The translations under genes were made by a program, and so were the position numbers. The notes beneath the pieces are model-generated. The model saw only the letters and a list, made by a program, of their open reading frames with translations, was not told the origin of the DNA and searched no databases. From assembly GCA_021613535.1 (NCBI GenBank), contig CP075495.1, positions 12,028,001 to 12,092,000 of the forward strand: 64,000 nt of DNA. Reading direction: 5' to 3'. This stretch comes from Adineta vaga (lineage: Eukaryota > Animalia > Rotifera). This document shows positions 2,059 to 17,143 of this stretch, piece after piece; the first letter of the stretch is position 1; every line of letters begins with the position of its first letter.

Positions 2059-4253
2059 ATGATCCGACGACAATACATCTTAATCGTTTTATTTACGGTT
2101 ATATTTCAAATATTTTTCTCACAAACAAATACTCTTTCATTAAATGAAACAAATTCAAATGACCTATCTACGACAACAATATCAACAACGAATAAATGTG
2201 AACCAGCATCGATTGATGAATTTCCACAGTTATTTTTTACGAATGAACAACGTCGTCAAGGTGGAATTATTGTACATATTCTTCTTATTCTCTATTCATT
2301 TGCAGCAATTGAAATTGTTTGCGATGATTATTTTGCTTCAGCACTAGAAAGAATCAGTTATAATTTCAACTTAAAACCGGTATGTATTTCAAGTTAATAA
2401 GATGCCAACATGCAATCTTATATCTATGTATGTATTTGTAATAAAAGGATGTCGCTGGGGCAACTTTTATGGCATTGGCAACATCAGCATCAGAATTTTT
2501 TACATCGATAGTTGGTGTTTTTTTTGTTAAATCGGATATTGCTTGTAAGTTAATTGCACATTTTTCTTCGTCCCAACTAAAAAAAAGGAAAGTCCTTTGA
2601 TACTCGATGCCAAATAATTTACATAAATATATTTAATTATATGCTTGGGTGAAATAACTATAGTCTATTTTATTTAGATACAGACTATAAACTTAGGAAC
2701 ACTATTTTTCTTCTTCTTGATGTATACTGAATAAAATAGAAGTTTTCCCTTTTGATTTGATTAGAAATTAAATTCGAGAGTTTTTTATTTCTTTTTTAGT
2801 GGGTACCATTCTTGGTTCAGCCGTATTCAATATTCTGTTTGTCATTGCCTTATGTGCACTGATATCAACAAGTGTATGTCAAATTGATGGCTATCCAATT
2901 GTTCGAGACGCTGGTTTTTATTGTATTGCCGTTGCTGTTCTATTCATAATTATATATGATCAACGTGTTTATTGGTATGAAGCATTTGCATTAGTTTTAC
3001 TGTATTTTGTATATGTTGGTATATTAAAATTTAATGATCGTTTTTCACGTCTTATGCGTGGCAGCTCAACGAATCAAAAAACAATGACTGGTATTTCAAA
3101 TGAAGAACATCAAGAACAATTACAGTCTTTAAATAATAGTGTAGAATTAGAACAACATCTCTCAGCACGTGCTCGATCTGTTTCCGAATCTGTTATGATG
3201 AATGCAAATACACATTCAATAACAACAACAAACGACATGAACGATATGAAACAACATGTACCTTATAAACCATGTAAAAAACGTCTAAATGAAACAACAC
3301 ATAATCGAAATATAGTTGCTGATGCAACGGAAATTTTTGATCCATTGAAACTACCCACTAAACGATATAAAATCTTTAAATGGATTATAATGTATCCTGT
3401 TCGTTTATTAATGCATATTACCATACCTGATTGTCGAAAAGAAGTTTTTCATAATTATTATATGCTCACATTTGTAATGTCAACTATTTGGGTAAGAAAT
3501 AATTGAGAGTAGAGAGAAAAAAACTAACAACAAGGACATTTCATGTTTTAAAGACCAACAAAGAATTTCCTTTTTTTTTCTATCTAGAGAAGATAATCAA
3601 TGATGAACATAATTGCTTCTCTTTTTTTATTCCAGGTCGCTGGTCTTGCTTATCTTCTCGTATGGCTTGCTGTCATTGTTGGGTATACTTTGAATATACG
3701 AGATAATATTATGGGTTTAACAGTATTAGCATTTGGTTCATCAATAGAAGAAATTTTTTCTGCTATTGTTATGACACGTCGTGGTCATCCAGAAATGGCT
3801 ATTGCAGGTTCTATCGGCTCGAATGTCTTTGATATTTTAATGGGCTTAGGTATTCCATGGTTATTTCGTAATTTAATGCGTTTTACTTATCAACCACCAC
3901 CAATTGAAACAGTATCGATTATGGGTAGTGAGGCTATAACTTCTTTAACAGTTTCTGCAGATTCTGGCAATGGTATAACAGGTGATATGTTAACATCTAT
4001 GAATGACAATGGACCATTTTATGTTGAAATTCACTCTCGAGGTTTAGTTTATTCAACAATCGTTCTTTTCAGTGCACTTATTATATTTCTTCTTACATTC
4101 TTTGTCAATCGATGTCGTTTAACAAAATTTTATGGTGTTTTTCTTATCATTGTTTGGTTGTCTGTCATCACTGTCATGTGCCTATTTGAATTGAATTTTT
4201 TTGGTTTGGTTCATTTTCCAGCGTGTGCAAGTAAAAGCATAAATACTGTTTAG
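2059..4253 (+). CDS. K+-dependent Na+/Ca2+ exchanger (NCKX/SLC24 family), spliced, about 4 coding exons
   Basis: Signal-like N-terminus; 'IVCDDYF'; alpha-1 repeat DVAGATFMA...GTILGSAVFNIL (exon ~2448-2544 spliced to ~2799); alpha-2 repeat MGLTVLAFGSS...GSNVFDIL with the K+-determining Asp. Confidence 0.93.
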
Positions 4254-4323
4254 AATATTTTCTTTCGTTGTTTGTATTGGTATTTTTGTGAAGTAAAATA
4301 ACAGAACAAAAAACAAATCATAT

Positions 4324-5227
4324 TTATTTATTTTCTTTCCAACAAGATGAAATTGTTGATGTGTTGTTGTTGTTGTTATTATTATTATTTTCATCATCTT
4401 CATAAAACTCCTACAAGAAAAATAATTTAATTGAGCATCGATGCTTATATATATATATATATATCGATCGATAGATTCACAAGAGGGAAAATAGAGGAGA
4501 AGAAGAAAAAGAAACGAAAATTACTTTTTTCCATATCGGAATAGTTGCTTTGAGTTGCTCGATAAGAAAGGAAACGGCGTCCAAAACATCACGACGATGA
4601 GGTCCCGAAACATAAATAGCAACGGATGCTTCACTAATGGGCACGTCACTAATACCCAAAATATAAAAGAAAGACGAAATTAAACATTATTGAAAAGAAA
4701 AGAAAATCGCGACTATGTTATTAATCTCTTTTAAGATTGAGAAAATAATTCAACTTGCAATTTCTTATCTTCTTTTTCCTTTTTCTTGATCGATTTACAT
4801 ATTTCTCTTAATCTATTCTTATTACTCAAGTGTCATTAGCACTAATTCCACATTTCCGTGGTGTTCTGTTTCTTTTCTATGAAAAAAGGATATTTTTAAT
4901 CGTGTGCAAACCCTAAACGATGGCAGATGGCTATATGTTTAATATCTGTGAACCGTCGTCGAGCATCATCACATAATCGATGCAGTTCTTGTAAAGCCAT
5001 CGATTCATAAGCTTCATAGAAAAGACGAGTAACTTGACGACCTTCAAAATTATCTCTTGTAATACCTTTTAAAAGAAAAAAAATAAGATAAACTAGTTAA
5101 TAAATAATCTTTTCAAGTATTCTTGCAAACCAATAAATGATGCGACAGCACCACAGGAAGAAGCAAGAACTTGTTTATACAACTCGTCTAATTGAATTGA
5201 TTGAGTTTGAAGATAAATATAATTCAT
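4324..5227 (-). CDS. MOCS2: Molybdopterin synthase catalytic subunit MOCS2B (MoaE family), 4 exons
   Basis: Spliced translation MNYIYLQ...SCGAVASFIG|ITRDNFEGRQVTRLFYEAYESMA...HRLG|DVPISEASVAIYVSGPHRR...LKATIPIWKK|EFYED...WKENK*; these are MoaE motifs. Confidence 0.93.
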
Positions 5228-5237
5228 TTTTTTTTGG

Positions 5238-5647
5238 TTAACCACCACCAAACGGTGGAAGAAGTGCTATTTCGCTCTGTTCAGTAAATTGAATTAAATC
5301 ACTCTCAAGAAGATATTGTTGATTAACAGCCAAACGAAAAGTATTTGTTAACAGAAACGATTTCAATCTGAGAGAAAAGAAGAATAGAAGAGGAAAACGC
5401 TGAAGATTAAGTTTATTACATCGGACGATGTTCAATGATACGATCGAGTATACTTTGTTGAGTATAGGAAATTGAAGAATCAAAATCAAGTTTTTCACTT
5501 GGTACACCAACTAATTCCCGCAATCGACCAAAATAGATTATTGTGACCTTAAAGAAAAGTCACGATTCCTATTCAATTATTTAACTAATCGAAGCAAATT
5601 ATCCGCTAGCATTTCCTTTCTTATATCCTGACCTGTGTTGTTGACAT
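5238..5647 (-). CDS. MOCS2: Molybdopterin synthase sulfur carrier subunit MOCS2A (MoaD/ThiS family), 3 exons
   Basis: MSTTQ|VTIIYFGRLRELVG...|...LAVNQQY...EIALLPPFGGG*; MoaD-type N-terminal motif and C-terminal Gly-Gly. Confidence 0.92.
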
Positions 5648-5880
5648 TGCATTGTTAGAATTTATCTAGAATTAAAAGTCTGTTGGATAAAACAAAACAG
5701 TTTCTATTCAACTATTCAATTTCGCTAGGAATTATTTTCTTTTGATAGGAAAAAAACAAACAAACAAAGAGCTCACACGAAAAATAGATAAAAAAGAAAC
5801 ATCTCTCGACCTTGTTAATTATTGTTCGTGTCGTACTATTTGGACGGAATTTAGAGAAATAAAAACTCGTGATTAATCAA

Positions 5881-6718
5881 TTAAATAATACGTGATATTT
5901 GTTTGTAAGAAAATGTACGTTGATGATTATTTAAAAAGATTAATCGATCAGTTACAAAATGTCTTAATCGACAGAGAAAACGACATGGACTTGTTTCGAT
6001 CAAATACGTCCACCAATTGGAAAATAAATCCGATAGAGTAAATGGCGGATAACCACCTGAAACAAACGAAAAGTATCTCATATAAATCAATAAATATGTT
6101 ACTATCATTACCATTGATATAGAGAGCAAAACAATATCCATCATAATTTTCACCGTTGATACAATAATAATATGGTAGATGTACGCGATATTGAAAATTT
6201 CTTGATTGATAAAATTGTATCGCTTGTTTATTCGAATATAAAACATGTAAATAAACAGCTTTACATGTCACACGTTTGTGTACCATATTCAATAATTGTT
6301 GTAAAAGAATACCGGCTAAACCTTGTCGTCGATATTCTTTCGCAACACCTAAAATCAATATGTAACAAACAGGTGTTGTTAAAGAAAATGATTTATGTAA
6401 AATTGCTTGATCTTCACGATTACAATTGCCTAACGATAGAATATCAGCAACAACTAAACCAATTATCCGTTGTGTATACGTTTCACATGCAGCTAGAGCG
6501 AAATATTTTGAATCATGTGCTATGTCATCATACCATTTATCAGGATATTCAACTGGAAACCAATCACAACAAAGAGTTTTCACTTCAGATTGATCTCCAG
6601 GACGTAAGAAACGAAATGAAACAGATAGATTGCTATTCGGTAAAATATGTAATTGTTCAATAGAGAAAGTATCGGACGTATTCAGGTTGACTGCTATTGA
6701 TTGAGATGATGTTTGCAT
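5881..6718 (-). CDS. NAA60: N-alpha-acetyltransferase 60 (NatF)
   Basis: LCCDWFPVEYPDKWY, YILILGVAKEYRRQGLA, AVYLHVL, LPYYYCI, YING|GYPP; intron at ~6058-6111; C-terminal amphipathic tail. Start codon uncertain. Confidence 0.92.
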
Positions 6719-7002
6719 ACGATGTTTCGAATGTTGATTTTGATTCGAGCAATTTTCAATAGAGTCGTCCGTGACTAAATACATAGAAATAAAAACGTCT
6801 GAATTATTAATTCACTTACTTGATAGTTTTATAGATTCCTGGAAAATGACGATAATTCGTCGATGATCATCTAAACTAGAAAAAATAAATCAAATATAAT
6901 TCGATGTAAAAGAAATTTTGAATTTTCTAATCTATTTTCATAGTTTAATATACAAAATACAAAAAAAAAGAAATTACATTGATTGACGAAAATAATATCT
7001 GA

Positions 7003-7571
7003 CTAGTTAGCATCAATATGAGTTATCATTGGTAATCGATCACCCGAAAAAAATCGTATTGTCATTGTCGAATTTACACGTTCCATTTCTTGTCCAAATA
7101 CTTTTAAACGTTCATTAAAATCTGTTTGAAGTTGACGTTTTTCGACATCAGTTTGACATTTGTTTCGTCGTGATAATAATTCTCCTGCAGTCATTCGAAG
7201 ACGTTGATTAAGATAATCAGGTGCCAATCGTACTTTGATACAATCACTACCATCATTGATTAAAACTTCTAATTCAAATTCATTTTTAACAACACGTGGA
7301 TTAGCTACCATGGTTGAAAAAGATCCTTTGATAAGAAAATCTTGAAAATCAATAATTGAAGATAAATTTTCTCGTCGAATAATAGATATGTATGTATAAG
7401 GTAGACAGATTTTAATAGTTGGTACAGATGGTTGAACAACAGGATCTGAAGGAAATAGATCATCGTAGGAAAATGATGGAGCAAAGTTTATGTGAGATGA
7501 ACGAGTTTCTTCAACATCTGAAATTAATATAAGTTCTTCAAAATCATCGAATGTGGATGAAATTTGATTAT

Positions 7572-7603
<32 letters not shown>

Positions 7604-8799
7604 GCTGTTGTCAGAGTCGTAGAATAGGATGAAGGTGGATTATAATCAATAGAATTTGATGCCAAATGACTATCATCGTGAATGACACCATCTGCATAAG
7701 CTTGACGAATGAAATCATCCATTTCATCTTCATTTTCATTTCCATGAGACAACTAAAAACATCAGTGATAGAATAGAAGTTAAATAGTTTAATGATAAAG
7801 ATAACGAACCGCTTGATTTGTTTGTATATCAGGTACTGTTGTAGTTGAATTATCTAAACTAATTTGTATATGAACTTTTGTATTTAATCGATTAAATCGT
7901 ATTCGACTTTCATCTAAATGTGACGCTGTTTTTGATCTAAAATATGACAAGCATCACATAATTTGATTAGTTTCATTGATTGAACTTACAATGATGTTAA
8001 TGCTGTTTCGAGCGATGAATTTTTCTCAAATAAATTTTCAGCATAACCACCAAGTATTTGTGTATTTTTCGATGTTAACAGTAACATACCACGACGAAAA
8101 ATGACCGGACCAGAAACAAGAATCTATAGAAAAGAAATCAAATCTTCTCAAAACATTGATAAAATTTACTTTTGCACCAGGTAATATTGTATCTCGGTCA
8201 AGACCATTGATTGATTCATACTCTAATCCTCGAAGAATCGTTTTTCCATCCGTTAAGTCCAAATAGAGAACACGTTTCGGTGGTGGTGGCTAAATATTAA
8301 ACCACATCTTTTTCTTCATTCTGTTAGTCTTCAAAATTACTGCGTAATAATCAGACACACTTACTCACTTTCCATTGTTGAGTTTCTGTTATATCTGTAT
8401 CAATTCGTTCATTATCATTTTGATCACCATGTATATCCATAACTTGACTATAATAAGGTTCTGATATACATAAGATACTATTGATCTATACCATAACAAA
8501 TGGATTTATTTTGTTTTTACAAATACGAAAAGAATTACTTGTAGTGCATATTTTCCAGATAATTGAACTTTTTTCGCATTTAAATCTAAATCATTAGGTA
8601 AACAAGAAGCATCAGCAATCAAAGCAATATCTGTATGAAGCCATTGATTATAAATTTTTTCCAAAGTATAACTATTTGTTAAATCAGCTAATTGAAATTG
8701 ATCACGTAACCAAACTAAACATGCTTGAAGCCATATTGATGGTACATCGAATGAATATTTTGAACGAAATGCACGACGAACATTATCAGTAACATTCAT
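7003..8799 (-). CDS. RMI1: RecQ-mediated genome instability protein 1 (BTR complex), multi-exon
   Basis: N-terminal WLQACLVW...QWLHTDI; OB fold with RVLYLDLTDG...GLEYE..LPGAK; C-terminal PYTYIS...INDGS OB domain. Confidence 0.9.
7570..7610 (-). repeat. (ACA)n trinucleotide repeat encoding poly-Thr in RMI1
   Basis: ttgttgttg... run on the + strand; TTATTTTTTTTTT in translation. Confidence 0.8.
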
Positions 8800-9157
8800 G
8801 ATACTAAAATATTGAGAGAATCGGGGTTTTTTTTGTATGTTTTGTTATTAACATGAATAGGTTTATTTTTGTCAAATAGATTAGAATATACAAGAAGAAG
8901 AAGAAGAAAAACAATTTAAAATGTACGTTTTTTAAAAGAAAACAATAACCAAGAAAACAATGTAAATTCAATGGTTTAATTACTGCGTGATAGAGTTCTT
9001 GAAAAATAGAATTTCTTTTACATTCAATAATCATGGCAAAGTATATATATGACTGTATAGTGTTAAGAATAAAAGCAATTGATTTGTATTGATAAAGGAT
9101 CTGACAAGACGAAAATTTCTTCGATCAATTTTAGCATTTGGTTTTCTTTTGAATCAT

Positions 9158-11256
9158 TCAAGAAATTGGACGTTGTTCACCATACATAATTAAACGTTCG
9201 GGTTCATTAATAAGTTCATCATCATGATCTCGATGTTGACCATGAAATGTTCCGATACCACCACTTAATTGACCGCTTGTTAAAACATTACCTTGATCTC
9301 TTGTTATAGGTTGACTGAAATTAGTTAATGCTAATAAAGCAGAATTATCTGCATCATCAAGTCGACCAATACCGGATGCATCTAACGCTACTGCTAATGA
9401 TGTATGTCCAACATACGGTGTACGATCGATGGAAGTCATCAATGATGTTGATTCAATATTTGATTCATCTTCTTCACTGATCGATGTAATACGATGTTGA
9501 CGTAAATATGAAAAAGTTGTTGGTGAATAACGATGTAAATCGCCAAATTGTTGTTGTTGATATAAATAATTTGATGGAAGTGGATGACCAGTAGTTACAC
9601 CGCAATAATCACGTAAAGAATTAACTTGTGTTGTTAACATATTCATACCAGCACGCATTAAATTACCTGGATTACGTAGTGAAGATACTGTTTGTACACG
9701 CATTGTATTTAAACGTTGTTGACTGGATTCACGAAATGAATGTAGATAAGCAGCTGAACTAGAATATTCGAGAAATTTTCGATTTACATCAATCTGTTTT
9801 TTTTTTATTGAATAAAAGAAAACTTTACGTTTCAGCAGCTTGTCGAATTGTTCCACCAGCATGTTGTACACCATAATTGAATAATTCTGTTGCGCGACCC
9901 ATTGTTTGTCCCATATGTTCACTGACTTGTTGAACACCCAATCGAAGTTTATCACGTACTTGTTCAAGTGTACCACTAATATTGGCTGCTGCCAATGACA
10001 ACCATTGATTTAATTCAAAATTTGGTGGAGTACGTGCAGCACTATTAGGTGCCATAGTTGGATAAATCGGTGGCGTTTTTAAATGATCACCATTGTAATA
10101 TGTACGCTTTAATGTTATACACAATGCACCAGCTACAAGTGCCATAAAAAGTCCGAAACTCATCGTATAGATAAGTTGCCATAGAGCACGATTTTTGACA
10201 TGACTTTCAATATCAAAATTAAATTCATAAGTATATATTCCAAGCATATTTACACCAGAACATGATATACGATTTTGTAAAGCAGCACGTGCTTGTGTGA
10301 CTGATAATTGATTTTCATTAAATGCATGTAATGTATGTTCAGTTCGTGCTGTTAATGGACCAGCTAATGCTGTTATTGTCACATATATTGAATCATCATT
10401 ATGATTAAATGATAATAAATCGATATTAGTTGAATTCATCGATGTTAAATTACCAAAAGGTGTTGACCAAATGATGATCGGTGGTGGTTGTGCATTTATA
10501 GGACAGATCAAAGTAAAAGTTGAAAAACGATAATATGATTGTAAGGAAGTCTGAATAAGATGTGGATCGTAATATGGTGCCATACAATTATTATTTTCAC
10601 TCTAAATTATATAAAAACGAACTTATTTTGATTGATCATCAATTTCATAGACTTACGGCTCTTTGTGGAATATTCGTAGCTTTTTCACATATAATTCGAT
10701 ATTTTTCCATTGTACATTGACAATCAAGTGGATTATAATCCAATTTAATATTTCTATCAATTAATAATTCAGGTAGAATACGTTTAATTCGATTATGTCT
10801 TAAATCAATTTCTTTTAAATTTTGAACATGAATAAAAATTCGTGCATCAAGAATTGTTAATCGATTATTAGCTAATGAAATTTGTTCTAATGCATCTGGT
10901 AAAACAATTGTATCTGAATTAAATTGTTCCAAATTATTTGATTCAAGTATCAATTGACGAAGATTTGATATTGTACGTAATTTCGACGTAAATATCATCG
11001 ATTGAAATTCATTTCGACTTGCATTTAATAAACGAAGTGTCAATGGATAAGTATCAATTTTCAATGTATGTAATCGATGATTGATAAGAAAGAAATTTTC
11101 AAGATATGGATGATTTAAAATACTTTGATAAGTAATATTATTTGATTTAAAATGTGCATCACATATCCATGTTGATGATAATGTTGAATAACATTGACTG
11201 TTAACAACAAGTGGAATGATGTTGATGAAATAGAAAAAAACATAATGAATAAACAT
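9158..11256 (-). CDS. Single-pass LRR + Ig-like transmembrane protein (IGLR-2/LIG-like), about 3 exons
   Basis: Signal peptide; LRRs (LRQLILESNNL, LKEIDLRHNRI); LRRCT (NPLDCQC); Ig-like C..W..C; TM helix; cytoplasmic tail with LEQVRDKLR...QVNSLRDYCG. Confidence 0.82.
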
Positions 11257-11281
11257 CTGAAAAAGAACAAAACAAAGATAT

Positions 11282-11689
11282 TTAAGTTGATTTCAATGAA
11301 ATCAATTCAAGTTTTATTTTTAATAAAATTTCATCAAATTGTATTCGTAATCGTTTCAAAGTTTCAATCTGTTGTTCTTCATTGATTTCATCTGGACTTT
11401 TCAATTGAGTTAATGTCAATTGAAATTCATTTTCGAATTGTTCAAGTTCTTTTCTCAAGAGTAAATTCGAAAAATTTCGTAAACGTAAACGTTCTTTTTC
11501 ATAATTATAATCATAGACTAATGAGTTTATCAATGAATAACCACGAATAAATCCATTTTCAAATGCATCTTGTTCGCTCGATTCCAATCCTTCACGAAAA
11601 CCATCTCTATATCGAAGACTTTCAATCAATTGAACATCATGACGAGCAACAGTAAGATCATCACCTGTCTCATCAAATATATCATCCAT
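11282..11689 (-). CDS. YAE1: YAE1 homolog (Fe-S maturation factor of ABCE1), intronless
   Basis: DIFDE... followed by deca-GX3-like DGFREGLESSEQDAFENGFIRGY, resembling Yae1_N. Confidence 0.8.
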   Translation of the reverse strand: MDDIFDETGDDLTVARHDVQLIESLRYRDGFREGLESSEQDAFENGFIRGYSLINSLVYDYNYEKERLRLRNFSNLLLRKELEQFENEFQLTLTQLKSPDEINEEQQIETLKRLRIQFDEILLKIKLELISLKST

Positions 11690-11747
11690 ATCTGAAATTG
11701 AAAAAAGAACGATGAATATATTCGATGTGTTTTGTTTTTCTCAATTT

Positions 11748-12290
11748 CTAAGAAAAATAATCTTGTAAAAATAATTTGGCCATATTTGATAAACGATTAT
11801 CTTTTGATTGTGAATATCTTTCAATACATTGTCGTATTTCAATTCGTTGTTCTAAATCATGTTTTAATTGTTGATTAAAATCACACAGAAACATTAATGT
11901 TAATATGGAATTTAGAACAATATCGAAACGATTGGAAAATAGACATTTGATTAAAATTGTTGTAATTGAAGGATTTTTTACTAATATTAATTGATTATTC
12001 GTTTGATCAGAACTAAGATTACATAGAGCAGCTAATGCATAATGTACAAAATCATCATCTGTATGCATTTTCAAACAATCAAGTAATAAATCAATGATAT
12101 TTAATTGTCGTAAATGATGATAATTGATAGGATCATAGGAAAAATTAGCAAAATTGGCAAGAATTTGAAGTTTATTTTCATTATTTGTTGATATTTGTTC
12201 ATATTCATTCAATAATTGTTTCAAATATTCCAAACGTCCAACACCAAAACGACCTGTTCGACGTTGTAATGATTTTGGTGTACTAAACAT
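11748..12290 (-). CDS. ARMC7: Armadillo repeat-containing protein 7, intronless
   Basis: GRLEYLKQLLNEY...QILANFANFSYDPINY..LRQLNIIDL. The ATG at 12290 follows an AG acceptor. Confidence 0.9.
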   Translation of the reverse strand: MFSTPKSLQRRTGRFGVGRLEYLKQLLNEYEQISTNNENKLQILANFANFSYDPINYHHLRQLNIIDLLLDCLKMHTDDDFVHYALAALCNLSSDQTNNQLILVKNPSITTILIKCLFSNRFDIVLNSILTLMFLCDFNQQLKHDLEQRIEIRQCIERYSQSKDNRLSNMAKLFLQDYFS

Positions 12291-12523
12291 ATCAATATAT
12301 CTATTACAAAAACAAAAGAAAATTTTCTGAATCAATATTTCTAAATTGAAACAAATAAGAATTCCGTGTAGACTTGACTACAAAAAACAAAGTATTGAGA
12401 TTATTTTTATTGCAAAAAAAAATTGTGACACAAAAAAATGGGGATGAAGGAACAGAGAGAAAATATTTGCAGCACCGTTGACATCTGACAAATGCTGAAG
12501 AATAGAAATAATAAATATAGAAA

Positions 12524-14944
12524 TTAAACTTCAACAGCTGATGAAGATGTCGTTAAATCATTTTCATGATGATTACTGCATATCATCGACGGATCTATAC
12601 ATGAATGATGTCGAGCAGGAGAATTTTTCGTTAACATCACTAGATATAAGAGATGAAATGAATAGCTGTGAAGTTTGTTATTATCTTACTTGAATGATTT
12701 GTATCAGAAAAAAATGAATGAGAAGGAGATTGAAGTGGAGCATTATTTTTATCGACAAAGCCAAATGTTGTTACTGTATTTTGTCGACTTGCTGTTAATA
12801 ATGAATCACCACTACGACGATCAGTACTTGTTTGATCGGAAACAGTTTCATAATCTTCAGGTTCTTCATCGAGTGTTAATTGTGATAGACCTAGCAACAT
12901 AAAAAATTTATGTTTCTCTCAAATTGAAATTTTATCTCATACCTTGTGCATATAAATCTCCAAAGACATAATAACACTGTTCAGAAAATGTTAATTTATG
13001 AACTGTATGACGAATATAACCTGCTTTAAGCATGGATGAAGCATATTTTCTTGCATCATTTCGATTCACAAATCCATCGACATGTTCGAATAACCAATTC
13101 ACCAAATCAGATCCTATGATACATATACATATGTTAATAATCAATGTAAAAGAAGATTTCATTCGAACCAAGAAATGATTTTGGAATAGGTATTTTAAGC
13201 CAAATACGATCACGTATATCAAGACCAGAATCAGGTTCAGCCATAGCTCGAATAATAGTATCCATATCCGAATTAACCGTTAAATTAAGATCAAGACCAA
13301 AACCTATTCGATGGAAATATATATGACATGAAATCGAATCTAACTTGAATTCTTACGTTCATTATCAGCGATTGTATTACTTGTACTTGATATAGTTGAA
13401 CTCATATTTGTTGTTGAATTTACTAATGATTGTCGATGATTAGGTGGATGATGAACTAATAATTGATGTTGAGGATTTTGAAATGTATTTTGTACAGCTT
13501 GAGTATGTGCGAGCCATGAGAGAGGATCAACAGGACGTGCTTGTTCATGACGTGGTAATGAAAAATAACCGCGTGGTGTTGGATCCCAACATTTTGCTAC
13601 AACTAATTTTATAGGACTAAAATGAATTTAATAGAAAAATGAAATTTCCAATTCATTTTGAAGAAAGCAATATACCCAGGTTTTTGAACAGTCTCTCGAA
13701 GGATTTTAACAGCATCATCATTAGATAAACCTTCAAAACTAATATCATTAACTTGAAGTATCATATCTCCAGGTTCAATACGACCATCTTGTGCTACTGC
13801 ACCACTAAAAACAAATATTAATCTTTCTTTTCTTTAATCTCAAGTTGATCATTTTATTGTACCCTTTCATTATTGATCCAACATAAATTCCTCCATCACT
13901 ACCACCTTGTCGGTCACTTTGTCCAACAATACTAATACCCAAAAAATTCACAGAATCTAAATGTTATCAAGTAAGTTATGATTTCAATTCGAAATGAAAT
14001 TTTCAATAGATATACCTAAATTCAATGTTACTGTGATAATATTTAACGTCATTGTTGAATCCGAATTTAGACTACTAAATGATGCAGTCTGAAAGAATAC
14101 AAAATAAATAATATAATGTATAAGATAAGATTTTACTCGATCAAATCCAGTTGGTATTCGATGTTTACGTCGACGAGGACGATTACGCCCATGATATCTT
14201 GATGACATAGCAGTTGAATCAGTAACTGTTGAATATCTAATAAAAGATAAAAAAAAAAGAACATCATTGATATTAAAAAGAAAATACTATTTGATCAATG
14301 AAATCCAACCTATCATCTTCTGTTTCATCTAAAAATGTTGTTGATTCTAAATCACTATTTGGAAATGATGCCAATTCATCATTAACTATTCGCTGGTGTT
14401 GTTGTTGTTGTTGATGTTTGAGAAAATATTTTTCATGATCAGCACTATTCCCTGATGTATAACGTCGACTATTTCGTTGTAATCGTGGTTGTTGAATATT
14501 AAATGAACTATTCGTTGTCGATATTGTCATTGTATCATCTCGATCATGATGATAATGTTTCGATTGTCGACTTCCTCCACCACTTGATGTTGTACTACCT
14601 TCAATCGAAACAAGATAAGCGAGAATACGGTCTGGTGTATCAAATGGTAAAACTTGTTCATCATTGATGATTTCTTCTTTGACTTTTCCAATTGATGGAT
14701 CATTCGTTGCAAAGAAAAATTTATATTTTGTACAATTACGATCCAAAGCATTTTTGAAATCCTTTAAACGCGGTGTAGTTGTTAAATTTAATTTTGTTAA
14801 ATAAGGAGGATCTTGATCATCAATATAGTAAAAAATTTTGATTTCGGAATTGATTGGAGTTGAACTCAACGATGATGATGTTGCTGGTAGTGAAGGAGAA
14901 GAAGATTTCTGATCAGTAGGAGATTTATCCACATTATCATTCAT
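12524..14944 (-). CDS. dsh: Dishevelled (DIX-PDZ-DEP), multi-exon
   Basis: DIX ([13 protein letters not shown]...VKEEI); basic region; PDZ ([10 protein letters not shown]...[25 protein letters not shown]); DEP ([22 protein letters not shown]...[11 protein letters not shown]). Confidence 0.96.
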
Positions 14945-16231
14945 GTTTTTTTTTAAATTTAAAATTCGATTAATTTATTATTATACATTCTGAAAATAAA
15001 AAAAGTCAAATAGTCTGTATTTGAGATCAACAAAACAAGACATCGTAATCGTATCGTATCGTAAAAGAAGATCAGATGACGAACAATGAGCAAGCATTTT
15101 ATCGGCATTACTTTTGACTAATAGAAAAGAGGAATCGTTTCTTTTGCTTACTACACACACACACGCACACAAATATATAGATGTGATATCGTTACAATCG
15201 ATAGATGGCATTAGTCATCAAAATTTTCTTCTCATTTATTTTTTTTTCTCTCAGTGATGATATTGTACACATCTATCGTTATCAAATTAACTAACCATAA
15301 TCAATCTTCTATTCGATAAATGTTATGTCTTACAGAATAAATCTCCGTGACGTATTCAGTTACTTAAGAAAAATCGCGAACTGAAGCAGATAAATGGATT
15401 ATCTAATGAGATCGTAAATGCTAAGCTTGAAGGAAAATAATTACTATTATGCGAACAACAATAATCTTCTTTTCATCATATTTAACAGTAAAAGTTTATC
15501 AAGTGAATGATTTAAAAAATGCTCACAAACATAGTACTATTGAATTTTTAATGGTCATTAATATACAAAAGAACAAATTTAGTTCAGTGAAAATAACAAT
15601 GGATTGAATCTGTCCAACGATATTGTATCATTAAAAACATTTTGTATTGCTATAATTCAGAAATAAATCTGATGTATTACATAATATGAAGACATTGGAA
15701 CACAGTACGTAATAAATGAAGGAGGCGTGGATCGACAAAAGTTGTGATTATGTGTACATTCCAGTGGGGGTCTAGTCGATACTGAAAATGAACAATTCTT
15801 TTGCAATTAATCATGTTTATTGTTATGCGTACTCATTGAATGAACTATTTTCTTTTATGAAAAAAAACTGTTCGTAGAATACGAAATCGATTGATTTCAC
15901 AGTTTGTACTTTTTTTGCAAAACCGAATCGCGTAGTTGAATACATTGAAAAAGTTATCTTATCACAAGACGTACATGTACTATTTAGATTTCATTTGTAT
16001 AAAATATCCATATAATTACAATGACATTTAATATCTATGCATTTTAAATTTATTTCACACATTAAAGAAAAAACGTTAGGCATTTCTATGATAAACTTGG
16101 AATATAAAAATAGAACTCGATGACAGTTTTAACATATGACCACGAACAAAGAACGACATAGAATACTTTTTGAAAGCTAAGTATGCATCATCACAAGTAT
16201 ATAGTAGAAAATGACAATGTCAAGAGACTGA

Positions 16232-17143
16232 TTACGCTGTTCCTTGAGCGGTCATAGTTTGAGGTCGAACTCTTCGATCAGGTTTCTTACACATAATCAT
16301 TTGAATGAATTCTTGACGAAATTCACGAAATGTAGTCATATACAATACAAATGAAAGTATGTAGTACGAATAAAGAAAACTATCAAAGAATTTGAGAAGT
16401 GTTCCGTCTGCTGATGAAAAGAAAGCAAATGCTATACTTGATGGTACAGTCATAAATAAGAAGAGAAATATATTGATCACCAATGTAATAGATATTGCTC
16501 GATGTTGTATTTGTGAATTTTGTAAATGTGTTGTACGACGTAGATTTATTAAATGATATATAACACTACTGTTGAATATGACCATCAATATAAGAGGAAC
16601 AAAAGTGCAAACACCTAAATTAACATAATCCCACAATGGATAAATATCATATAACCAAGAGAGAGCACTAATCGTACCATTTGCTCGATAATAGCAAACA
16701 AAAAGAAAAAAATGAAAATTTAAAGCAAAAAGTATAACTACAACACATCCAATTATAATTAGAACACTTTTTGAACGGTTGAACCATGTTCGATGAAGAC
16801 GACTCATAGATAAATATCGATCGAAAGAAACGAATACACGAAGCCAAGCTGATGATTGACCAGAAAAATAACTAATAAATGAGACTAATTTACATGATAT
16901 TAAAGAGTAACGTAAAATATAAACATTCTGTATTGTTGATAGATAATGATCAAGATTCCATCCATATAACATTAAAATATCAAAAATAGCCATGGCACGC
17001 ATATAATGCAATGTTGGTCGTGTTCTTGTATCCCTAAATTTTGCTCGACAGAGTATAATAAACGTTGTAATATTCAATAAAGTGCCCAGAATAAGTAAAG
17101 TTAATGAATGATAAGCAACTATACGAGCTTCTGTTGATGACAT
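16232..17143 (-). CDS. Intronless rhodopsin-like orphan GPCR (expanded family, copy 1)
   Basis: 7 hydrophobic segments, TM3 C...DRY, family motifs GWNLDHY, SSAWLRVF, QHRAISITL. Confidence 0.9.
   Translation of the reverse strand: MSSTEARIVAYHSLTLLILGTLLNITTFIILCRAKFRDTRTRPTLHYMRAMAIFDILMLYGWNLDHYLSTIQNVYILRYSLISCKLVSFISYFSGQSSAWLRVFVSFDRYLSMSRLHRTWFNRSKSVLIIIGCVVVILFALNFHFFLFVCYYRANGTISALSWLYDIYPLWDYVNLGVCTFVPLILMVIFNSSVIYHLINLRRTTHLQNSQIQHRAISITLVINIFLFLFMTVPSSIAFAFFSSADGTLLKFFDSFLYSYYILSFVLYMTTFREFRQEFIQMIMCKKPDRRVRPQTMTAQGTA

Follow-up and report, generated by a model that had tools for sequence, protein, structure and literature searches.

Eight co-directional genes and their junctions

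The sequence analysed here, referred to as the window, is a 64-kb stretch of the genome of the bdelloid rotifer Adineta vaga (contig 2, CP075495.1, positions 12028001-12092000); the genome searched comprised 100.8 Mb in 6 contigs. The window had a G+C content of ~30% and introns of 46-79 nt. Eight genes lie side by side on its minus strand between positions 14944 and 4324, in the order dishevelled (dsh), an ARMC7-like gene, a YAE1-like gene, a gene for a leucine-rich repeat (LRR) membrane protein, RMI1, an NAA60-like acetyltransferase gene, MOCS2A and MOCS2B. We favour, with some reserve, the reading that this cluster is kept in most bdelloids and that its ARMC7-YAE1-LRR core is a tunicate-like operon resolved by spliced leader (SL) trans-splicing. 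A preliminary description of the window had presented all eight genes as one such operon. Its account of the layout was accurate: all eight open reading frames (ORFs) were found on the minus strand, by reading that strand and by Pfam searches in which exons were searched singly, and the stop-to-ATG gaps of 233, 58, 25, 358, 284, 233 and 10 nt were exact on re-measurement. Eight co-directional genes in a row are, by themselves, unremarkable.

The three core genes and their spacers were all read on the minus strand. The ARMC7-like gene is a single exon encoding 180 aa (11748..12290; Pfam Arm, E 5e-8) and has an acceptor AG 10 nt 5' of its ATG (12301..12302). The YAE1-like gene is also a single exon, encoding 135 aa (11282..11689), and gave a weak Yae1_N match that was below threshold (E 0.0027). 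The LRR gene encodes a single-pass membrane protein in three exons (9158..11256; introns 10602-10656 and 9759-9828; Pfam LRR_8). ARMC7 and YAE1 were each single-copy in the genome, and a duplicate (ohnologous) cluster was thereby ruled out for comparison. The ARMC7-YAE1 spacer of 58 nt (11690..11747) ends in the acceptor TTTCAG (AG 11693-11692), followed by AT and the ATG of YAE1. The YAE1-LRR spacer of 25 nt (11257..11281) holds a pyrimidine tract and CAG (AG 11258-11257) abutting the LRR ATG, and there was no AATAAA within it. According to the operon criteria for Ciona, where operons without intercistronic DNA are also described (Satou et al. 2006, PMC1488885), co-oriented neighbours lie <~100 nt apart; from CDS to CDS, both ARMC7-YAE1 (58 nt) and YAE1-LRR (25 nt) fall within this distance.

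The splice acceptors proposed earlier were present as quoted, with AGs at 12302-12301, 11693-11692, 11258-11257, 8805-8804, 6872-6871 (or 6877-6876) and 5667-5666, but the one assigned to NAA60 fronts a non-coding leader exon and not the NAA60 ATG. A strict acceptor (pyrimidine tract and YAG) within 4 nt 5' of the ATG was found at 1.5% of the ATGs in the window, and YAE1, LRR and RMI1 all carry one, so that this set of acceptors is beyond chance. When the 64-kb window was scanned for the stop of a long ORF followed within 70 nt by an acceptor and the ATG of another long ORF, the two core junctions and one artefact were the only hits.

Both core junctions are shared with other bdelloids. In ten taxa the YAE1-LRR spacer measured 25, 28, 27, 37, 21, 32, 30, 35, 33 and 36 nt, and in all ten it contained a pyrimidine tract with AG directly 5' of the ATG. 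The ARMC7-YAE1 spacer ranged from 26 to 218 nt across bdelloid taxa. Its acceptor, YTTCAG followed by AT-ATG, was kept in the 13 bdelloid taxa read, which did not include A. ricciae L021, with the variants TTAAG in L018 and ATT-ATG in L022; it was absent in Didymodactylos. The 58-nt spacer of A. vaga is without the conserved 3' untranslated region (3'UTR) blocks present in A. steineri and Rotaria, and ARMC7 may therefore lack a separate poly(A) site. The argument that the short gaps leave no room for a promoter held for the YAE1-LRR spacer, which stays at 21-37 nt in ten taxa, but the gaps of 233-358 nt elsewhere in the run can hold promoters.

The spliced leader and RNA contigs across the core

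In the genome, 42 SL genes fitted the pattern exactly and had ...CCAAGAG followed by a GT donor, and the SL exon was identical to the published rotifer leader GGCTTATTACAACTTACCAAGAG (PMC3795323). The 42 copies sorted by exon pattern and the 40 scored matches found through intron similarity gave one exon, plus single-base variants and one two-change variant. A second, operon-specific leader class was not found in these exon-pattern and intron-similarity searches of the genome, which SL genes with unrelated introns would escape. Because a single leader class was found, there is no SL2-like marker.

RNA evidence came from assembled contigs of runs X1 and X2, from one study, and X5, from another. 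The GT..AG introns of LRR and RMI1 were all removed in X1, X2 and X5, including the five introns of RMI1, and were retained in the DNA run X11, which identifies X1, X2 and X5 as RNA. The LRR contig of X2 aligned over 8861-11258 (2.27 kb) with both LRR introns out. Its 5' end had nine unaligned letters that read, in mRNA sense, CTTACCAAG; next came AG and the ATG, at 11258-11256. The chance of nine SL letters matching in this way is ~4e-6. The 5' end of the LRR mRNA is thus the 3' end of the SL, spliced straight onto the LRR ATG at the predicted acceptor.

The X1 contig at 11256-12302 covered ARMC7 with its acceptor and YAE1, together with the 58-nt and 25-nt spacers that follow them, without a gap. 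ARMC7 and YAE1 were also on one contig in X2 (11329-12302) and in X5 (11275-12209), that is, in all three runs and both studies, and ~1 kb aligned with 0-4 mismatches. ARMC7-YAE1 appears as a stable, abundant dicistronic RNA. The X1 contig ended at 11256, one base beyond the AG of the LRR acceptor, and then carried four unaligned letters whose identity was not read; the X5 contig ended at 11275. By analogy with the '...AGAAAA' ends of Ciona, a poly(A) tail may begin with the four letters. On the other side, the ARMC7 contigs of X1 and X2 ended at 12302, the A of the acceptor AG, with one non-genomic letter that was not read, and this end fits an SL ...GAG joined at 12300. For RMI1, the 5' end of the X1 contig computed exon by exon was 8804, the G of the acceptor, and the bin depths of X1 and X2 agreed with this position.

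These observations would have another origin if the SL letters and the dicistronic contig came from chimeric assembly or from contigs of other loci aligned by chance over short stretches. Several further loose ends in the data were indeed chance alignments of chromosome 1 contigs sharing 19-28 nt. However, both introns were out of the SL-bearing contig over its 2.27 kb of alignment, the match of its nine loose letters to the SL was exact and kept the register of the acceptor, all three runs gave the ARMC7-YAE1 contig at the low mismatch rate given above, and both genes are single-copy. An artefact of this kind is highly improbable.

The chromosome 1 loose ends had been considered as a divergent second haplotype at 11055-11251, and this candidate was rejected. 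The letters left loose at 11055 in three RNA runs, and at 11251 in the DNA run, mapped to unrelated loci at C1:6.04 Mb and C1:9.52 Mb, and since these share only the 19-28 nt with the window, the ends are uninformative for this locus. Within the ARMC7 coding sequence, at ~12172-12190, an (AAT)n run of 19-25 loose letters replaced the reference sequence in the three RNA runs; it is probably a microsatellite allele, an in-frame Asn repeat, that differs between cultures. The short contigs from Logan, ENA and JGI (L014-L018, L022-L025) showed no SL, and those reaching a dsh or LRR intron retain it, so that they were taken as DNA. As to the SL RNA genes, most were arranged as head-to-head pairs ~155 nt apart on contigs C1, C2, C4, C5 and C6, with large clusters on contig 5 (for example C5:9.88-9.93 Mb), and minor exon variants such as GCTTATTAAAACTTACCAAGAG were present.

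Conservation and extent of the cluster

Gene order in relatives had been put forward as a check, and the whole order proved to be kept across bdelloid families. The complete series dsh-ARMC7-YAE1-LRR-RMI1-NAA60-MOCS2A-MOCS2B was found in A. steineri, in Rotaria sp. Silwood2 and in a metagenomic bdelloid (YAE1 64% identical), and A. ricciae had the same order up to the contig end, which lies in MOCS2A. The identity of orthologues was 65-83%, with 77-83% for A. steineri and A. ricciae and 74-75% for Rotaria, and 52% for Didymodactylos. Orthologues named ARMC7 occurred in Adineta, Rotaria and Didymodactylos, and YAE1 had 41 bdelloid homologues besides the protein of the window. The upstream flank in Rotaria, an SF1-like gene on the other strand, had no homologue anywhere in the 64-kb window, which indicates that the block has survived intact at least one rearrangement next to it. 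Outside bdelloids, ARMC7-YAE1 linkage was not seen: a distant ARMC7 homologue (43% identity, L019) adjoins an ANAPC2-like gene and not YAE1.

Several public gene models of the cluster are fused, namely YAE1 with LRR (L021 10588-13110) and RMI1 with NAA60 (L021 13462-16293) in A. ricciae, and NAA60 with MOCS2 in A. steineri (L010 16250-18689), where the dsh model is also one exon short at its end. These are annotation errors due to the tight packing, and accounting for the fusions in public annotations is the practical use of the arrangement described here.

Upstream of the core, dsh is a multi-exon gene on the minus strand (12524..14944; ATG 14944, stop 12526-12524; Pfam DIX, E 7e-17, and DEP, E 2e-13). 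Before its ATG lies a spacer of 1287 nt (14945..16231, minus strand), the only long spacer of the run and a candidate promoter region, and an acceptor-like site is located 45 nt upstream of the dsh ATG. The run is bounded on this side by a co-directional, intronless rhodopsin-type G protein-coupled receptor (GPCR) gene on the minus strand (16232-17143; Pfam 7tm_1 for 16235-17143) and on the other side by a convergent Na/Ca-exchanger gene (Pfam). The GPCR gene has tandem duplicates in A. ricciae (L021 1009-1920 and 3913-4824) and in the metagenomic bdelloid L024, and diverged copies are found elsewhere in the window at ~23.3, 25.2 and 26.5 kb. No known RNA family was found with Rfam in 3500-16500.

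The dsh 3'UTR and dsh-ARMC7 spacer (12303..12523, minus strand) contains GTCAGAT at 12489-12483, the block CAGATGTCAACGGTGCTGC, and AATAAA at 12411-12406 in a second block that ends in TGTAGTCAA (~12378). These blocks (12378-12495) were kept in Adineta, Rotaria and metagenomic bdelloids, the first as CAGATGTCAACGGTG(G)TGCTGC and the second as TTTGTGTCACAA..GCAATAAAAATAATCTCAATRCTTT..GTAGTCAA. The AATAAA is ~105 nt, and the end of its block ~75 nt, before the ARMC7 acceptor. Judged by its letters, the second block could be either the dsh poly(A) signal or a TATA/Inr-like ARMC7 core promoter (AATAAAAATAA, ~30 nt, TCAAG). A small extra cistron in this 3'UTR was considered and rejected, as the ATG of the first block opens ORFs of 11-41 codons whose frame is not kept between taxa.

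Downstream of the core, the LRR 3'UTR and LRR-RMI1 spacer (8800..9157, minus strand) contains GTCAGAT at 9105-9099 and, near 8866, a stretch with AATAAA. Its acceptor is TATTTTAG (AG 8805-8804), with 4 nt between this and the RMI1 ATG. RMI1 itself has six exons (7003..8799, minus strand; Pfam RMI1_N_N and RMI1_C). The GTCAGAT motif occurred five times in the 64-kb window against 9.6 expected occurrences. Of these, three are in the 3'UTRs of dsh (12483-12489), LRR (9099-9105) and RMI1 (6997-7003), 0-52 nt past the stop, and each of these three copies was kept in A. steineri and Rotaria. The motif has the YCAG|AT core in common with the SL acceptors.

RNA contigs came close to both of these borders. 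In X5, one contig with the final dsh exons extended through the 3'UTR as far as 12308, 6 nt short of the ARMC7 acceptor, and the LRR 3'UTR contigs of X2 reached 8861, 55 nt from the RMI1 acceptor, with 8806-8860 free of any listed RNA contig. Thus, while the CDS gaps at the junctions other than the two core ones are 233-358 nt, the remainder not covered by RNA is at most 6 nt for dsh-ARMC7 and at most 55 nt for LRR-RMI1. The boundaries of the RMI1 RNA are compatible with an intercistronic region of ~50 nt.

In the tail of the run, the coding region of the GNAT/NAA60-like acetyltransferase (5881..6718, ATG 6718, minus strand; Pfam Acetyltransf_1, E 2e-14) is preceded by a leader whose acceptor (AG 6872-6871) and 13-codon upstream ORF (uORF), encoding MIIDELSSFSRNL, span 6829..6872 on the minus strand. 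This acceptor follows the RMI1 stop by ~130 nt in three genera. Both the uORF peptide and its location directly behind the acceptor were kept in A. steineri and Rotaria (MIIDELSSFSRNL in the window, MTIDDLSSFYKKI at L010 15694 and MMIDELSSFPKKT at L011 16771), which makes it a candidate conserved-peptide uORF. MOCS2A (5238..5647, minus strand), a MoaD/ThiS-like protein that ends in GG (ThiS, E 0.0032, last exon), has its acceptor AG at 5667-5666, 18 nt 5' of the ATG. MOCS2B (4324..5227, minus strand) gave MoaE matches in two exons (E 2e-14 and 7e-8). The 10-nt gap between them is A-rich and contains no acceptor. A GG-ending ThiS-like exon, a 10-nt gap and a MoaE ORF give, at the level of the gene sequence, the arrangement of a bicistronic MOCS2, and MOCS2A/MOCS2B is read as an ordinary conserved animal bicistron and not an SL-resolved junction.

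The claim of a single operon of all eight ORFs, with one promoter upstream of dsh and SL resolution at every acceptor, can now be weighed. In its favour, the sole long spacer is the 1287 nt upstream of dsh, the order of the eight ORFs is kept from Adineta to Rotaria although the upstream flank in Rotaria differs, the RNA borders are near-contiguous at dsh-ARMC7 and LRR-RMI1, and the NAA60 leader acceptor closely follows the RMI1 stop in three genera. However, no listed RNA contig bridged dsh-ARMC7 or LRR-RMI1, and none was found over 6700-6899, which holds the leader exon and the CDS start of NAA60; the stretch compared with RNA contigs reached downstream as far as this part of NAA60. The deeply conserved dsh 3'UTR has its own AATAAA, its second block could be an ARMC7 promoter, and the dsh-ARMC7 gap widens to 511 nt in Rotaria and ~1.6 kb in Didymodactylos. 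Moreover, gaps of 233-358 nt are roomy enough for promoters in a compact genome, and MOCS2B is without an acceptor. We regard an operon of eight genes as quite unlikely, and the original claim as supported in part. The upstream dsh and the downstream RMI1, NAA60 and MOCS2 may be adjoining SL-accepting genes, whether co-transcribed with the core or not.

The core as a candidate operon and its relation to known systems

In the reading that we favour, one primary transcript starting upstream of ARMC7, from the dsh promoter or from one in the conserved block of the dsh 3'UTR, would be the source of the LRR mRNA as well as of the ARMC7-YAE1 RNA. The single rotifer SL would be trans-spliced at the LRR acceptor, which would also mark the end of the upstream RNA, and YAE1 would be translated from a scarcer SL-spliced form made through its invariant acceptor.

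Alternatively, there may be no operon, each gene being driven by a promoter that lies within the UTR or 3' part of the upstream neighbour, with the SL trimming short outrons and the ARMC7-YAE1 contig representing an overlapping ARMC7 3'UTR or read-through. In bdelloids more than 50% of the transcripts bear the SL irrespective of gene context (Pouchkina-Stantcheva and Tunnacliffe 2005, as cited in PMC1925144), and dsh, the first gene of the run, also has an acceptor-like site before it. Rotifer operons are given as 'not reported' in PMC7986045, bridging precursors into LRR or RMI1 were not observed, and the same genes are 0.5-1.6 kb apart in Didymodactylos. Against this explanation, the YAE1-LRR spacer of pyrimidines and AG leaves no room for a promoter in any of the ten taxa, so that an LRR promoter would need to lie within coding sequence; RNA containing YAE1 crosses the whole of that spacer to the acceptor; and the block kept its order where the flank changed. 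Separate promoters throughout are unlikely.

Several points weigh against the operon reading of the core. From assembled contigs, neither strand nor true ends nor the unity of a molecule can be proven. Only one run showed the SL letters, and they amount to 11 nt of leader. The claim of read-through RNA across the gaps held for ARMC7-YAE1, in three runs, but at YAE1-LRR, as at dsh-ARMC7 and LRR-RMI1, no bridging contig was among those listed, and a common YAE1-LRR precursor can therefore only be inferred. Trans-splicing had been predicted at each of the acceptors before the downstream ATGs; SL letters were seen at the LRR acceptor, and the contigs of ARMC7 and RMI1 begin at theirs, as trans-splicing there would have it, but no SL was seen on YAE1, whose acceptor the contigs pass through. 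A pattern scan of JGI metagenome contigs for the SL joined to the conserved YAE1 start gave 0 matches, which is uninformative, as the collection may contain no bdelloid transcripts. An LRR promoter inside the ARMC7 or YAE1 coding sequence is possible. Finally, in Didymodactylos only dsh, ARMC7 and YAE1 are linked, with gaps of 1.6 and 0.46 kb, and the LRR gene is elsewhere.

Two of these points can be placed. The invariant YAE1 acceptor suggests that an SL-spliced YAE1 monocistron is also made, and contigs would hide such a form, since assembly trims short SL tips wherever a longer path is available. Didymodactylos was the most divergent bdelloid sampled (ARMC7 52% and YAE1 44% identical), and for this reason the tight core may postdate its split from the others.

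A bolder extension of the core operon can be formulated, which we hold to be very doubtful. It would have a bdelloid-wide operon from dsh, a Wnt-pathway gene, to MOCS2 that predates the Adineta-Rotaria split, in which each upstream message receives its 3' end in concert with trans-splicing at the acceptor that follows, the AG being the place of poly(A) addition; ARMC7-YAE1 would be a stable, translated dicistronic mRNA, and GTCAGAT a part of the processing signal.

SL trans-splicing in bdelloids has been known since 2005, and the operon layout is new for rotifers in the literature searched, where no paper on bdelloids describing an operon was found. Rotifer operons are also listed as 'ND' in PMC2481426. 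We put forward the leader placed on an ATG 25 nt past the previous stop, at a junction shared by ten taxa, as evidence of polycistronic transcription in rotifers. If this is true, one more phylum joins the few animal lineages with operons, and the finding bears on whether operons arise wherever SL trans-splicing has evolved.

The core most resembles the operons of the tunicates Ciona and Oikopleura. There, as here, unrelated co-directional genes are combined, monocistronic and operon genes share one SL, intercistronic DNA is lacking or spans 23-30 nt (the latter for Oikopleura dioica, as cited in PMC1488885) with the acceptor AG as the boundary, dicistronic RNA is detectable (here as an assembled contig), and the short spacer is without a canonical AATAAA. 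In contrast to the tunicates, the present case is from Rotifera (Gnathifera), its SL sequence is unrelated and the SL lands directly on the ATG; moreover, poly(A) at the acceptor is here suggested and a precursor into the downstream cistron inferred. With the SL2-type operons of Caenorhabditis elegans (~100-nt spacing), the cluster has in common the distances of ~75 nt from the dsh AATAAA block to the ARMC7 acceptor and of <55 nt from the LRR 3'UTR to the RMI1 acceptor, but the SL2-type is marked by a specialised second leader, whereas a single leader class was found here. The 25-nt YAE1-LRR junction is closer to the minor SL1-type operons of C. elegans without a spacer. For MOCS2, the animal arrangement known from human (PMC9607355) likewise has a GG-ending MoaD-like ORF followed by a MoaE ORF on the same strand with no acceptor between; the ORFs overlap in human, whereas in A. 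vaga they are 10 nt apart and form the tail of a conserved SL-accepting run.

Operons are also described in a chaetognath, Paraspadella gotoi. Chaetognaths were placed in the gnathiferans, the group that contains rotifers, in a study that names rotifers in passing as a lineage with trans-splicing or operons and gives no rotifer data (PMC12460157). Chaetognath operons, defined there as SL-receiving genes <250 nt apart, are also without an operon-specific leader, but the leaders are unrelated and number three in the chaetognath and one here. Given that placement, bdelloids would be, if the operon reading of the core is true, a second operon-bearing gnathiferan lineage besides the chaetognaths.

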